From Blastocystis sp. Blastoise (lineage: Eukaryota > Protista > Bigyra: Opalinata): a stretch of 64,000 nucleotides of DNA. A program made the translations under genes and the position numbers. Positions 35,537 to 41,500 of this stretch are shown piece after piece. The notes under the pieces were generated by a model that was not told where the DNA came from, ran no database searches, and saw only the letters and a program-made list of their open reading frames with translations. Within the stretch, counting starts at the first letter, position 1; every line of letters begins with the position of its first letter. The stretch covers positions 310,001 through 374,000 of the forward strand of contig JBBPEB010000004.1 of the NCBI GenBank assembly GCA_039096225.1. Reading direction: 5' to 3'.

Positions 35537-38500
35537 ATGACACTAGATGGTTCTTATTTAGATACTAATCAAAATAGCAACAATATCAAGCGTCAAAAAA
35601 TATTTTCGAGTATAATCATTTTTCATATATTTCTATTATTTTTTTTAGGAAACTCGATGTTATGGAAGGCAAACTACAAAAATAAAGAAACACAAAAAAA
35701 TGAAAAATTATTTTATGTGCTAAAAGTAGAGGGAAAAGATAGAATTTACTGTAGTTTGTGCGATGGTCCAGTAGAAAAAATGGAAAAGGACTATATGCTG
35801 GCTTCTAAAAGAGGAAAGGTAATTTATAATATATAATTATTTATTTTTCTACTATATATAGATATTTTATAAGTCAACTACAAATACAATGAATCATTTA
35901 ATGACAGTACATAAAGATATTCATGGTGAACTACTAGGCATGAATGGAAAAACAATTCTATCTTCAATGATTGATAGAAAAATTCAATCTACATTTGATC
36001 TAAATCTTTTAAAGGTATATATGTTTAAATATTAAATTCGATTAAACGTTATATATAACAAAATATAACAATTATTTACAAACAATATATTTATATATTA
36101 TTATTATTATTATTATTATTATTATTATTATTATTATTATTATTATTATTATTATTATTATTATTATTATTATTATTATTATTATTATTATTATTATTAT
36201 TATTATTATTATTATTATTATTATTATTATTATTATTATTATCTTTATTATTATTATTATTATTATTATTATTATTATTATTATTATTATTATTATTATT
36301 ATTATTATTATTATTATTATTATTATTATTATTATTATTATTATTATTATTATTATAGTGGATTATATCATCTTCGCGTCCATTTTCTATTGTTAATGAT
36401 AAATACTTTAAATCATTAATTCATTCTTGCAATACTAATATAATCATTCCGTCAAGATTTTCAGTTGTACGTAATATTCACGGTTTATACATGCTTTTGT
36501 CCAAACAATTGAAATCTTACTTTGAGAGTATTTTATTCTGTTCTTTTACTTGTGATGTCTTAACAACAAGAAATCATTTACATATGCTCGGAATTACTTG
36601 CCATTGGTTGGATCCAAAGTCAAAACAATTAAAATACGTTCTTTTGTCCTTGGAGTCCCTTTACGGTTTATCAAATGGGTCTTCATATTTTTCATCTTTC
36701 AAAAAAGTACTAGATTTTTATGGTTTATGGCCGAAATTGTTCTGCATTACTACTGATAATGGTGGCGGTAACTCAACATTTGTCGATGAAGTGGAAAAAT
36801 ATTCAAAACAAAATGGTTATACATTTACTAAGGATCGTAATTGGAATAGATGTGCAGCACATGTCATAAATATTATATCACATGGTATATAGAATCTTAT
36901 TATTATTATTATTATTATTATTATTATTATTATTATTATTATTATTATTATTATTATTATTATTATTATTATTATTATTATTATTATTATTATTATTATT
37001 ATTATTATTATTATTATTATTATTATTATTATTATTATTATTATTATTATTATTATTATTATTATTATTATTATTATTTTTATTATTATCTTTATTATTA
37101 TCTTTATTATTATTATTACTATTATTATTATATCACATGGTATATATAATCTTATTATTATTATTATTATTATTATTATTATTATTATTATTATTATTAT
37201 TATTATTATTATTATTATTATTATTATTATTATTATTATTATTATTATTATTATTATTATTATTATTATTATTATTATTATTATTATTATTATTATTATT
37301 ATTATTATCTTTATTATTATTATTATTATTATCTTTATTATTATTATTATTATTATTATTATTATTACTATTATATAGCATTTTTGAAAATAATCGAAGG
37401 ACAAATTGAGAAAATTAGAAAATTTGGAATGCATGTGCGTAATTCTTCTATAAATAGTTATCGTTTTGAAACAATTGTAGAAACAATCAATAATGGTAAA
37501 CGATTATCCTTAATTGATGATATTGATGTACGATGGAATTCAACATTTTATATGCTTCAGAGATATTTGAGATTATATAGTGCAGTGATTTCTTATTCAG
37601 TTCAGTTTGATGTTCATGAATACGATCTTTGTGAAAATGAAATAACTCTGGTCCAAGATATTCTAAGTGTATTGGCACTATTTGAAAGTATTACTAACAA
37701 ATTATCTGGAAGTCTTTATCCAACACTTCCTCAAGTACTTCCTTATTTTCTTAAATTGTATGATACACTAAACGAATTTTATGAAAATACAAAAGTAGAT
37801 ACTTTCAAAACTGGATTACTAAAAGCCAAAGATATGCTTATGAAGTACATTAATAAAGATTCTGGGATATCAATATGCTCAGTATTATTCGATCCGCGTT
37901 TCAAAACATCATTGATAAAGTCATCATTTCTGTGTTCAATTGAAGAGCAAATAATAGAAACGTATATTATTATTATTATTATTATTATTATTATTATTAT
38001 TATTATTATTATTACTAGGGTCACGCCGCAGGTCCAGTGCCTAACGGCCCCGGACCGCGGCTGCATAAAATCATATATGTTTGGCTTTTTGTATCTTTTA
38101 TCATTTATTATCTATTGTTATTTATTATTTATCATTTATTATATATTATTATTTATTATCTATTATCTATTATTATTTATTATCTATTATTTATTACATT
38201 TCTTATACTCTATATGGGGAGTTATAATCAGTAAATGATTGTAATCAGGTTCAATTCCTGATATAAGTATCTTTTAGATTCTTTTTAATAATATTTAAAA
38301 AACTAAAAGAATTTCTTAGATACTAAAAACGAAATTTGTATTATTATATATTATTTATTATTTTAAAAATATATTTTGTATTTATAAATAATTAAACAAC
38401 TGTTTTAAGCATTTTTTGAGTTTTTAAAGTCAACAACTTTAGAAATGAGTCACAATGTGAAGTACTCTTGAGTATTTTTAATTCATAAAATTTATTTAAA

Positions 38501-41500
38501 TAAACGTAATATAATGATTTAAACTCATTTTCATACTTTTTAAAAGAATTAGAAAGCTTTAATCATAACAAAGTCAGCATTCATTCTAACTTTGACTAAT
38601 AAAACATGGTTTAAAAAGTTAATATTTCTTCAGTTGTCTCAAATACTTATTTTAATCATAAATGACTCGAAAAAGTGACTTTTAAATAGACTTTACACAT
38701 TCAAGATCCACTGTATCAAAACAGTTTCCTTCAGTCTTTTGGTATAGTATAGAGTTTATCATACTATTTATTAAATAAAAGTAAATGTTTTGAATCTCTG
38801 TCTTAAAGACCCTTTTTGACACATTATGAAAAGTTGACACACTTAAACTCATTTTTAAATGCTAATATTTACATAGTTTACTTAATATGACCATAGCTAC
38901 ACATTGGTCATCACTTTAAAACATTTTATAAACCTTTTGCATTTGCTCATTTACTTTGACCAAAATATTTTCGTCCCTCCTTTTGATATAATATAGAGTG
39001 TGTGGTCTAGTTATATGAAAGTGAGAGGGAATTTTGAATCTCGTCCTCTAAGTCAGTCATTTTCACATTTTTAAAAATTAAGACCCTTAGAGTTGATTTT
39101 TGAAGTTAATTTTTCTACAGTGTTCCAAAAACACAATTTTGGATAAACTGAGTGAAAAATATTTTTTCAATAACTCACACAACCCTTCACACATCCACTC
39201 TCTAAAAATAGTTTTTGCTATATTTTTGATATGTTGTAGAGTGTCTCTTAGTGTATACTGAACAATATCTCGTTTCTTAAAATTCTCATTTTATGAGTCT
39301 CTTTGAACATATTTTTACTAATTGAAAGGCTTAAACATATTTTTAAAAGCTAATATTTACATAGTAGACTTTATAAGACACCATAAACATATTAGTCATC
39401 ACTTTAGACTTTTTAAAGACACTTTACCATTTGGTCATACACTTTGATCAAAATATTTTTGTCCCTTCTTTTAACATAATATAGGTCATACACTCTAGTT
39501 TAATGAATAAACACTCAAATATTGAATCTCGTCCTCTAAGTCACTTATTTTTACATTTTTTTAAATTTAAGACCCTTAGAGTTGACCTTTTGACTCAATT
39601 TTTCTACAGTGCACGAAATTCACGATTTTGCTCAAACAGAAGTAAAAATAAATTTTAAATAATAGTCACAACACCTCACACATCCACTCTCTAAAAATTA
39701 TTTTCTTTGTACTTTTGATATGTTGTAGAGCTACTATAGCTGTACACTAATTAATATCTCTAAATTTTTTATTCAAAGTCTAAGACTATGTTTTACACAT
39801 TCTTTTGAATTTGACAACCTTAAACTATTTATTTAAAGCTCTTATTCATAGAATATACTTAATACATGATTCTAAACACATATAGAAGCCATTTTACTTT
39901 TTAAGACACATTTTGTCATTTGCTCATATATTTTGACCATCATAATTTTGACTCTTCTTTTAATATAGTATGGAGTTATAACTATAGTTTATTAAATAAA
40001 AGTCATTATATTGAATCTCTCACTCTAAGACCACTTAATTCACATTTTTTCAAAATTGTCACTTTTTAACTCGTTATTTAAAAACTTTGTTTCTACTATA
40101 GTAGTTTGATGACCTATCAATTACAATACTGTAATATTAGTCGATTATAAGAAGATCGATGAAAATATCGATCACTCAAAAATTGTCCTCAGGAACTGAA
40201 AATCGCTACACCTAGGTTTTTTGACCTCCTGAATCAGAATATGATGTCAAATTAACAATCTAAATTTGACCGTTAAGGCCTCACGTGTTCAATATGAAAA
40301 AGTCTTTAAAAATAGATAAATATAAAGAATAAACACGGATAACGTATATTGTGGGATTGAGAAAAAATCAAGTTTACCCCATGTTTATTTTCCAATTGTC
40401 TGGTCAACAATTTTTATCGGGGTCATCCCAAAGAGCCAATCAAAAACGACTCAAAAATCATGTTTTCTGTTCTTTTATTAATAACTTTTTAATTATTAAT
40501 AATATCGCTTAACCAAATATACGGTGCACAACTACACGTTATATCGTATTGAACTGTGTTTCAACCAAAAGTTAACTCCCCGTAAGTTTAGAGGAGTTGT
40601 GGGTACAAACTCTAGTATATAGTAGCCAATCAAATGAATTTTCCAAAAACTGACCAATGGGAATTTTTTTGCCTATTTGCTTTATAATAGTAATGATTAT
40701 TATTATTATTATTATTATTATTATTATTATTATTATTATTCTTATTATTATTATTATTATTATTATTATTATTATTATTATTATTATTATTATTATTATT
40801 ATTATTATTATTATTATTATTATTATTATTATTATTATTATTATTATTATTATTATTATTATTATTATTATTATTATTATTATTATTATTATTATTATTA
40901 TTATTATTATTATTATTATTATTATTATTATTATTATTATTATTATTATTATTATTATTATTATTATTATTATTATTATTATTATTATTATTATTATTAT
41001 TATTATTATTATTATATATTCTATAGTTCAGAGTTATATGCTGAATTTTATTGGTCACATTCAAAAAAGAATGACTTACATATAATTTCTACTTCAAAAG
41101 TTAATGAAAAATATGTTAAAAATCATGATGTTGAAGATTTATCTCAATGTGCTTATGATAGTGTTTCTTTATTACATGAATGTAATATTAGTTTAAACAA
41201 GGATACTCCATTAGCTTCAAAAGATATAAAGAGTTCAGATGTAATATTGAACTCACGATGGATTGAACCTATGGATAAAACAGTTAGTACATTTATGTCT
41301 TCTTTTTCTAGTTATTCTTCTAATGAAAATGAATCTGAAATGAAAAGATATTTAAAAGAGCCGTTAATTTCTGTTGATGATGATAATATTATTACTTGGT
41401 GGCTTAATAAGAAAGACTTATATCCTAAACTGGCTTCTTTTGCACTTGGTATACTAATGACTCCCGGATCAAGTGTACCAATCGAGCAATCATTTAGTGG

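Follow-up and report, generated by a model that had tools for sequence, protein, structure and literature searches.

The insertion of one transposon into an intron of another transposon's gene is a general phenomenon, and lepidopteran Helitron-like elements are reported to disrupt (GAAA)n microsatellites. Canonical Helitrons, such as Helibat/Helraiser and Arabidopsis Helitron1, start with TC, end with CTAG, contain a sub-terminal 3′ hairpin, insert between A and T with no duplication and have no inverted ends; their autonomous forms encode Rep and a PIF1-like helicase, and their 3′ flank is AT-rich (PMC4778049, PMC3627910). In Helraiser, also with an AT-rich 3′ flank, the hairpin is located 11 nt from CTAG (PMC4778049). 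A different link between a DNA transposon and microsatellites is that of MuTAnT, a Mutator-like family of Medicago described as targeting (TA)n microsatellites as a rule (PMC4486113).

The element considered here lies in the window, i.e. the whole stretch of 64,000 nucleotides of Blastocystis sp. Blastoise that was analysed, and its features are collected in Table 1. It is a non-autonomous Helitron of 2,682 bp, placed on the minus strand at 38015–40696 and thus antisense to the hAT transposase gene that harbours it. Read on its own strand, it has TC as its 5′ end, at 40696, and CTAG as its 3′ end, at 38018–38015, preceded by a G+C-rich hairpin (−18.1 kcal/mol, z = −3.3) that stops exactly 6 nt before CTAG. 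The insertion site is A|T, with the A closing the 5′ flank and the T opening the 3′ flank. No target-site duplication was found in the flanks of 38015–40696, and no terminal inverted repeats were seen either on inspection of the ends or as an inverted pair listed for 38015/40696. The Helitron encodes nothing; it contains no ORF longer than 65 aa and, within the scanned 38385–40696, no match to tRNA or Rfam families. The ends, the 6-nt spacing of the hairpin, the A/T insertion, the lack of duplication and the presence of the array on both sides had all been put forward in the original prediction, and each of them is present in the sequence. With its TC/CTAG ends, 3′ hairpin, A|T site and absence of duplication, the element is a canonical Helitron of the Helitron1 group, to which it fits by the use of A|T rather than T|T as the target (PMC3627910). 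Helitron2 or Helentron elements would be marked by terminal or asymmetric inverted repeats or by a hairpin at the 5′ end.

Table 1. Features of the nested Helitron, the interrupted microsatellite and the host hAT transposon (positions in the window).
Feature	Position	Strand	Basis or remarks
Non-autonomous Helitron	38015..40696	-	ends and genomic copies at 90–100% identity
Helitron 5′ terminus, TCATTACTATTATAAAGCAA on minus strand	40677..40696	-	20-mer matched in genome
Helitron 3′ terminal CTAG	38015..38018	-	GCGGCRTKACCCTAG matches in genome
Sub-terminal 3′ hairpin, GTTA loop	38025..38061	-	folding energy
Internal tandem repeat of ~489 bp, Helitron body	39030..40057	.	2.1 copies, 74% match
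(ATT)n array, left part, 16.7 units	37965..38014	+	period-3 repeat
(ATT)n array, right part, ~108 units, in phase with left part	40697..41020	+	period-3 repeat
hAT transposase intron 6	37962..41026	+	GT...AG, phase 2, 3,065 nt; 383 nt minus Helitron
Complete hAT transposon, 6,985 bp (4,303 bp minus Helitron)	35184..42168	+	inverted ends and duplication
hAT transposase exon 1	35376..35480	+	gene model
hAT transposase exon 2	35519..35609	+	gene model
hAT transposase exon 3	35649..35818	+	gene model
hAT transposase exon 4	35862..36014	+	gene model
hAT transposase exon 5	36359..36884	+	gene model; 67% aa identity to paralog
hAT transposase exon 6	37379..37961	+	hAT-like RNase-H domain, profile positions 1–75 out of 100
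hAT transposase exon 7	41027..41690	+	hAT C-terminal dimerisation domain and stop codon

The likeness to the canonical elements covers all the terminal features mentioned above and extends to the AT-rich 3′ flank and to the occurrence of autonomous partners with Rep and a PIF1-like helicase. The differences concern the spacing between hairpin and CTAG (6 nt versus 11 nt in Helraiser), the body, which is here a ~489-bp tandem repeat, the unusually long 7–8 kb upstream of the Rep domain in the autonomous partners, and the host genome, of 33 Mb and ~20% G+C. Compared with nested intronic insertions in general, in which the exons are intact as they are here, nothing essential differs, and the host hAT gene is distinctive solely for its microsatellite-swollen introns. 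As in the lepidopteran Helitron-like elements, a microsatellite is interrupted, but its motif is (AAT)n and only ~9% of the copies are in arrays. The family also resembles MuTAnT in that a DNA transposon is tied to an AT-only microsatellite, and departs from it in that most copies are outside arrays and in the mechanism of transposition (PMC4486113).

The predicted boundaries held when both ends were searched for in the genome. The arrangement A|TC...CTAG|T was found in 30 of the 30 copies examined, with different flanks and no duplication in any of them. The 15-nt 3′ terminus (GCGGCRTKACCCTAG) gave at least 132 genome matches, versus 0 in a reversed control, and was followed by T in 100 of 100 among the matches listed. 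The family 5′ ends in the genome were at least 118, with A preceding 117 of the 118, and the 20-mer end TCATTACTATTATAAAGCAA was present in 31 genomic copies, every one with A before it. More than 40 full-length copies have the same ends and are 90–100% identical. These shared ends, together with the constancy of the 30 boundaries and the empty control, go well beyond chance. Two sub-families can be distinguished, which have the same hairpin architecture and differ in inner-stem bases that nevertheless pair; the hairpins of three sequence variants shared one geometry, with folding energies between −18 and −21 kcal/mol and z between −3.3 and −4.6.

Four copies, that at 38015–40696 among them, are 99.8–100% identical, and the different flanks argue against segmental duplication as the origin of such near-identical copies. 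Paralogous empty sites, gap-free at the junction, were found for five copies (L001, L020, L021, L022 and L027). L001 is a twin with 100% identity to the copy studied here, and its empty site agrees at 160 of 161 bases. Judging from the identity to this twin, the insertion at 38015–40696 is very young.

Concerning the host, it is a real element of the hAT superfamily. Its inverted ends (TAGGGATGAGCAATGA), at 35184–35199 and 42153–42168, are perfect over 16 bp, and it is flanked by the 8-bp duplication TGTAAAAG at 35176–35183 and 42169–42176. The gene model consists of 7 exons and is open. Domains were searched exon by exon, and the reading frame across the exons was followed by phase bookkeeping; exon 6 matched PF14372 with 27.5 bits (cut-off 27) and exon 7 matched PF05699 with 48.7 bits (cut-off 21.4), the RNase-H-like domain being split by intron 6. 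Judging from the gene model and its relative, intron 6 is a genuine one; it connects two open exons in phase 2, and its position and phase are kept in the paralog located on contig C28, where the intron is of ~230 nt, (TA)n-rich and devoid of Helitron. A search for further hAT copies, whether carrying or lacking the insert, gave only this paralog, which is 66–69% identical; the hAT itself is single-copy.

As had been predicted, the Helitron interrupts the (ATT)n tract within the transposase intron, with the exons and the splice-site dinucleotides untouched at the level of the sequence. When 38015–40696 is deleted in silico, the segments 37965–38014 and 40697–41020 form a continuous period-3 (ATT)n; the empty site of this copy is thus deduced solely from the in-phase microsatellite, not from an orthologous one.

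A family of RepHel partners, the search for which had been part of the original proposal, exists in the genome. About 50 RepHel reading frames contain Helitron_like_N, PIF1 and Pif1_2B domains, and an autonomous family of 11–12 kb, with a RepHel reading frame of 1,559 aa, has the termini TCATTACTAT... at the 5′ end and hairpin/GTTACCCTAG at the 3′ end, i.e. a common 5′ terminus and the same 3′ hairpin architecture as the non-autonomous copies. The structure of these autonomous elements was reconstructed from where their termini and Rep domains are located. In the examples C10:16538–28612 and C14:1054778–1066905, the family 5′ end is 7.2–8.25 kb upstream of the Rep domain, and the GTT-type 3′ end is ~3.3 kb downstream of it. 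The sub-family of 38015–40696 has only the first 10 nt of the 5′ end in common with the autonomous family, while the sister sub-family has the full 5′ 20-mer in common with it. The hairpin geometry of autonomous and non-autonomous ends is identical, with differences in inner-stem bases that keep the pairing. From the shared termini, we infer that the RepHel of the 11–12-kb family is most likely the mobiliser of 38015–40696, acting in trans.

Considering these results together, we are highly confident that the locus originated from a young insertion of a non-autonomous, Helitron1-type element, most likely mobilised in trans, at an A|T of a pre-existing microsatellite in the last hAT intron. The (AAT)n/(ATT)n microsatellite would have filled the last intron of the transposase gene of a complete, low-copy hAT before the Helitron arrived. 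The RepHel of the 11–12-kb autonomous Helitrons would then mobilise the non-coding element in trans, and integration would take place as is normal for Helitrons, at A|T and free of duplication, with the addition that A would be favoured after the T (A|TA). The locus is an ordinary nested insertion.

The insertion had been supposed to be silent for the splicing of the host gene, an idea without specific support. It is conceivable, even if somewhat less than probable, that the eightfold growth of the intron by foreign antisense DNA, from 383 to 3,065 nt, leads to poor splicing, a truncated transposase and a disabled hAT; the truncation, to which the same degree of doubt applies, would fall before the dimerisation domain. 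Such an effect would be in agreement with the shortness of the gene's five remaining introns (38–494 nt) and of the equivalent intron of the paralog; moreover, since intron 6 splits the RNase-H-like domain, read-through would terminate at the stop at 38238. The intact state of the donor, the acceptor and all the exons speaks against such an effect. The insertion is moreover so young that, with or without impaired splicing, the hAT would show no decay yet.

Another part of the original prediction was that the family uses intronic (AAT)n arrays as safe havens. The family ends are enriched in these arrays, in a single orientation; the idea of safe havens is mostly unsupported. The 3′ ends adjoining (AAT)n were 13 of 132 (11 of them independent), i.e. 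~9–10%, all followed by TAATAATAA. This is 4–5 times the genome expectation of ~1.84% (p ~2e-5, or 3e-3 under the most generous local background). The array insertions were 11 of 11 in one orientation, with the Helitron sense strand on the AAT strand in all of them, and the 5′ flanks agreed in 7 of 7. The other ~91% of family ends were found in (TA)n, unique AT-rich DNA and other repeats. Flanks of (TA)n amounted to 6 of 100 among the matches listed, which is the background level, so neither microsatellite contains most of the copies.

Among the 100 flanks listed, 77 had A at position +2 after the 3′ end and 19 had T, versus a background of 51% A and 31% T (p ~2e-6). Each AAT unit offers one A|TA site, on one strand, and it seems reasonable to interpret that arrays are hit in excess, and always in one orientation, at least partly for this reason. 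The A|TA preference alone would produce an orientation ratio of ~4:1 in arrays, as compared to the 11:0 observed (p ~0.09). Together with selection, the A|TA preference could account for much of this array pattern. A genuine affinity of the family for (AAT)n, specific to one strand and going beyond this preference and survivorship, is a tentative and rather unlikely proposal.

Even more doubtful is that the family actively targets (AAT)n arrays, intronic ones above all, as safe havens. The excess of array insertions and their uniform orientation would be expected from it, as would the array hit twice by elements 24 nt apart (C24:255318/255343) and the single TAA that exactly separates the tandem elements of contig C4. 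However, the large majority of ends outside (AAT)n and the background level of (TA)n flanks do not agree with active targeting, and part of the enrichment and of the orientation bias is covered by the A|TA(A) preference. Furthermore, in a gene-dense genome, the loss of insertions from coding DNA would inflate the apparent preference for any neutral AT-rich sequence, and it is known from Helraiser that Helitrons generally prefer AT-rich DNA, most strongly at the 3′ flank (PMC4778049).

Finally, the proposal that the Helitron is or was moved as cargo of the cut-and-paste hAT has no specific support and is highly improbable: although a future excision of the hAT would carry the Helitron, as it lies wholly inside intact hAT ends, the hAT is present once, its C28 relative has the short intron 6 without Helitron, its terminal repeat has only 5 matches in the genome, no MITE-like derivatives of it were found in the genome, none of the 29 other Helitron copies examined had flanks resembling this hAT, and the identical twin is outside any hAT, in unrelated DNA, where it lies in a tandem repeat of an autonomous Helitron.

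The locus is a clean and recent case of a Helitron nested in the intron of another transposon, and its description is an aid to repeat annotation that guards against taking the Helitron body or the 3-kb intron for genes. The Helitrons of this genome look active, as suggested by near-identical copies and by ~50 open RepHel reading frames. What reaches beyond this locus is solely that (AAT)n arrays receive insertions in excess and in one orientation. This bias, if confirmed, would bear on how Helitrons pick single-stranded targets and, were the affinity for (AAT)n true, a trinucleotide microsatellite would be an oriented landing pad for these elements, perhaps via an exposed single-stranded or slipped strand.

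The window Helitron, antisense within intron 6 of the hAT transposase gene, starts with TCATTACTAT (minus strand, from 40696) and ends in CTAG at 38015, exactly 6 nt beyond an imperfect 37-nt hairpin with a GTTA loop, which folded as single-stranded DNA at -18.1 kcal/mol (z = -3.3); the G+C content of the window is about 20%, and in composition the genome gives a dictyostelid-like impression. An A precedes TC and a T follows CTAG, there is no target duplication, and the arrays on either side, (TAT)16.7 and (ATT)108 according to Tandem Repeats Finder, rejoin in phase when the element is excised in silico. 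All these features (TC...CTAG ends, hairpin 6 nt from CTAG, A/T insertion, no duplication, flanking microsatellite) had been described in the original prediction, correctly as judged by inspection of the sequence. The body is a tandem repeat with a unit of about 489 bp, contains no ORF longer than 65 aa, and gave no match in tRNA and Rfam scans of 38385-40696. It adds a non-autonomous element to the canonical Helitrons and is located in the microsatellite-filled intron of a low-copy hAT.

The window's own genome, 34 contigs totalling 33.3 Mb, was searched with the 2,682-bp element as query and contains more than 40 copies that are full-length and 90-100% identical; three other copies, on contigs C13, C14 and C16, were 99.8-100% identical to the query. 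The family is large and young. The original prediction had proposed searching the genome for the 5' and hairpin-CTAG ends, and the boundaries turned out to be uniform: A before TC and T after CTAG occurred in 30 of 30 copies examined, between unrelated flanks without duplication. The 15-nt 3' terminus GCGGCRTKACCCTAG had 132 genome matches versus none in a reversed control, with T as the first flank base in 100 of the 100 listed; two 5' end variants had 31 and 87 matches, preceded by A in 117 of 118. The 80-nt flanks of five copies, once joined, matched uninterrupted paralogous sites elsewhere without a gap at the junction, which proves, for the family, the boundaries and the lack of target duplication. 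For L001, a 100% identical twin of the window copy, 160 of 161 bases of the joined flanks matched a tandem-repeat unit within an autonomous Helitron.

A longer class of elements, 6.4-6.7 kb, with lengths deduced from paired termini alone, shares the termini of the 2.7-kb family and has no Rep domain match. Tandem Helitrons lie head-to-tail with exactly TAA (four in a row, spaced about 3.0-3.2 kb) or TA between them; either a new copy entered the first A/T site adjoining an existing 3' end, or these are multimers from rolling-circle read-through or unequal exchange. An unrelated repeat, in which TCATTACTATTAAATAAGAA follows the same 15 nt on its left every time, had 12 genome matches; several lie a few kb from a contig start or from the known end of C13, and it may be subtelomeric.

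Concerning autonomous partners, encoding the Rep plus helicase protein RepHel, the Pfam Rep model PF14214 had 51 genome matches, mostly in open frames of 1,559-1,644 aa; two examples carried the domains Helitron_like_N, PIF1 helicase and Pif1_2B. The element extents were pieced together from the coordinates of Rep domains, 3' ends and 5' ends. Elements of the 1,559-aa family measure 11-12 kb. Their 5' end, TCATTACTATATATATGAGA, a 20-mer identical to that of the commonest non-autonomous sub-family, precedes the Rep domain by 7.2-8.25 kb, and their 3' end, ...GCGGCGTTACCCTAG, follows it by about 3.3 kb. The window copy's 3' end takes up the same fold, at the same positions, as the 3' ends of this autonomous element and of a second non-autonomous sub-family; the inner-stem bases differ among the three yet pair in each, as predicted for a functional terminator hairpin. 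A candidate autonomous partner, which the original prediction had proposed looking for, was found, with the 5' end of the commonest sub-family and the common 3' hairpin structure, and the best inference from these sequences is that the 1,559-aa family mobilises the window Helitron's family in trans. The 5' end is different, TCTTATATATAAAAGGG, in a second autonomous family, whose frames span 1,631-1,644 aa. In the 5' region of the 1,634/1,644-aa autonomous Helitrons, a long internal array (units of about 75-150 bp, TA-rich spacers) precedes the Rep domain by 4-5 kb; copies of this array are the insertion sites of the non-autonomous L001, L005 and L021.

Coordinates of the features described (bare numbers, window positions; C, contigs and L, sequence stretches of the same genome)
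Feature	Position	Remark
hAT inverted ends	35184-35199; 42153-42168	perfect, 16 bp
Swollen hAT introns	36015-36358; 36885-37378; 37962-41026	near-pure (ATT)n, 3% G+C
(TAT)16.7 array	37965-38014	
Window Helitron	38015-40696	minus strand
Hairpin	38025-38061	
(ATT)108 array	40696-41020	
hAT relative	C28:4581-8380	
Solitary hAT terminal repeat	C15:711261-711276	
Interrupted RepHel fragment and nearby hAT exons	L012:1198-1518 and 4736-5428 (C14:886387-890617)	
Dimerisation-domain exon, different hAT family	C14:891924-892157	
Paired Helitrons in one array	C24:252637-255318; 255343-261846	2.7 kb; 6.5 kb
1,559-aa family examples	C10:16538-28612; C14:1054778-1066905; C14:696033-683910; C1:410922-398857	
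Internal array of 1,634/1,644-aa Helitrons	L057:4300-6000; L059:3500-5800	
6.4-6.7-kb class	C1:119499-126081; C1:139285-132705; C11:21547-14963; C14:143372-136931; C19:947293-953969	
Tandem Helitrons	C4:1533816-1543143; C4:1504403-1510528; C1:410917; C10:16523	
TCATTACTATTAAATAAGAA repeat (sites include)	C13:1332086 and 1355429; C14:9099; C17:4178; C26:8070; C19:982318; C25:1043157; C31:1373141; C3:1734283	

The host is a real hAT with a real intron. Its inverted ends, TAGGGATGAGCAATGA, are bordered on both sides by the 8-bp duplication TGTAAAAG, and the gene model, checked by phase bookkeeping alone, has seven exons with GT-AG at all junctions and an open phase over 764 codons including the stop. 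Exon 6 covers profile positions 1-75 of 100 of a hAT-like RNase-H domain, and exon 7 carries the hAT dimerisation domain. Three introns measure 38-43 nt and three, swollen with (ATT)n, 344, 494 and 3,065 nt; the donor context of intron 5, tatcacatggtatat, recurs within that intron near 37130. The sole relative in the genome, on C28, possesses inverted ends of its own; exon by exon it shows 45-67% amino-acid identity, and its introns occupy the same positions. Its intron-6 equivalent has the same phase, with the conserved residues SELY...YW right after the junction, is about 230 nt long and (TA)n-rich, and lacks the Helitron. Because exons are conserved while introns diverge, the comparison supports the gene model and shows that the intron predates the Helitron. 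The equivalents of the (ATT)n introns contain (TA)n in the C28 paralog. A lone match to the terminal repeat on C15 (TAGAGATGAGCAATGA), with no partner among the matches listed, may have been left behind by a third member of the family. Because the intron splits the RNase-H-like domain, its eightfold enlargement might compromise the transposase, an effect that we regard as less likely than not.

Carriage of the Helitron by the cut-and-paste hAT, as originally proposed, is possible in principle and found no support: the hAT is present in one copy, its terminal repeat has only five genome matches, none of the other Helitron copies examined has flanks resembling this hAT, and the twin L001 sits in a different element. 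The proposed comparison of hAT copies with and without the insert came down to the C28 relative. Elsewhere, in L012, a non-autonomous Helitron interrupts a RepHel N-terminal zinc-finger-like fragment, and exons of a different hAT family lie about 500 bp downstream of the Helitron. Transposon-in-transposon nesting seems common in this genome.

As to the idea that (AAT)n arrays are targeted as safe havens, insertions in them are above expectation and in a single orientation. TAATAATAA adjoins 13 of the 132 family 3' ends and TTATTATTA none, leaving 11 independent array insertions after discounting one segmental duplication on C4; 5' flanks show (TAA)n in seven cases and (TTA)n in none. With 218,121 occurrences of ATAATAATAA genome-wide on both strands, and about 11.9 million oriented A/T sites as estimated from the AT-dinucleotide density of the window, the expected array fraction is about 1.84% (local estimates, 1.1%-3.3%), so that 11 of about 125 independent ends represent a 4-5-fold excess (P about 2e-5 at 1.84%; 3e-3 at 3.3%). 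The (TA)n flanks, 6 of 100 listed, are at background level. Selective loss of coding-DNA insertions would inflate the apparent preference. At the position following the T, 77 of the 100 listed flanks have A and 19 have T (background, 51% and 31%), and the family therefore prefers A/TA; this favours the AAT orientation but predicts about 4:1, versus the 11:0 observed (p about 0.09). About 91% of copies lie outside such arrays. On C24, two Helitrons in the same orientation lie 24 nt apart in one (AAT)n array. Helitron-like elements reportedly interrupt microsatellites in Lepidoptera as well (work cited in PMC4344730). The general target behaviour of the family is the same as that of Helraiser, with its AT target and preference for AT-rich DNA, strongest on the 3' flank (PMC4778049). 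The nested insertion at this locus is an ordinary event, and the oriented excess of insertions in (AAT)n arrays is the sole mildly unusual point.
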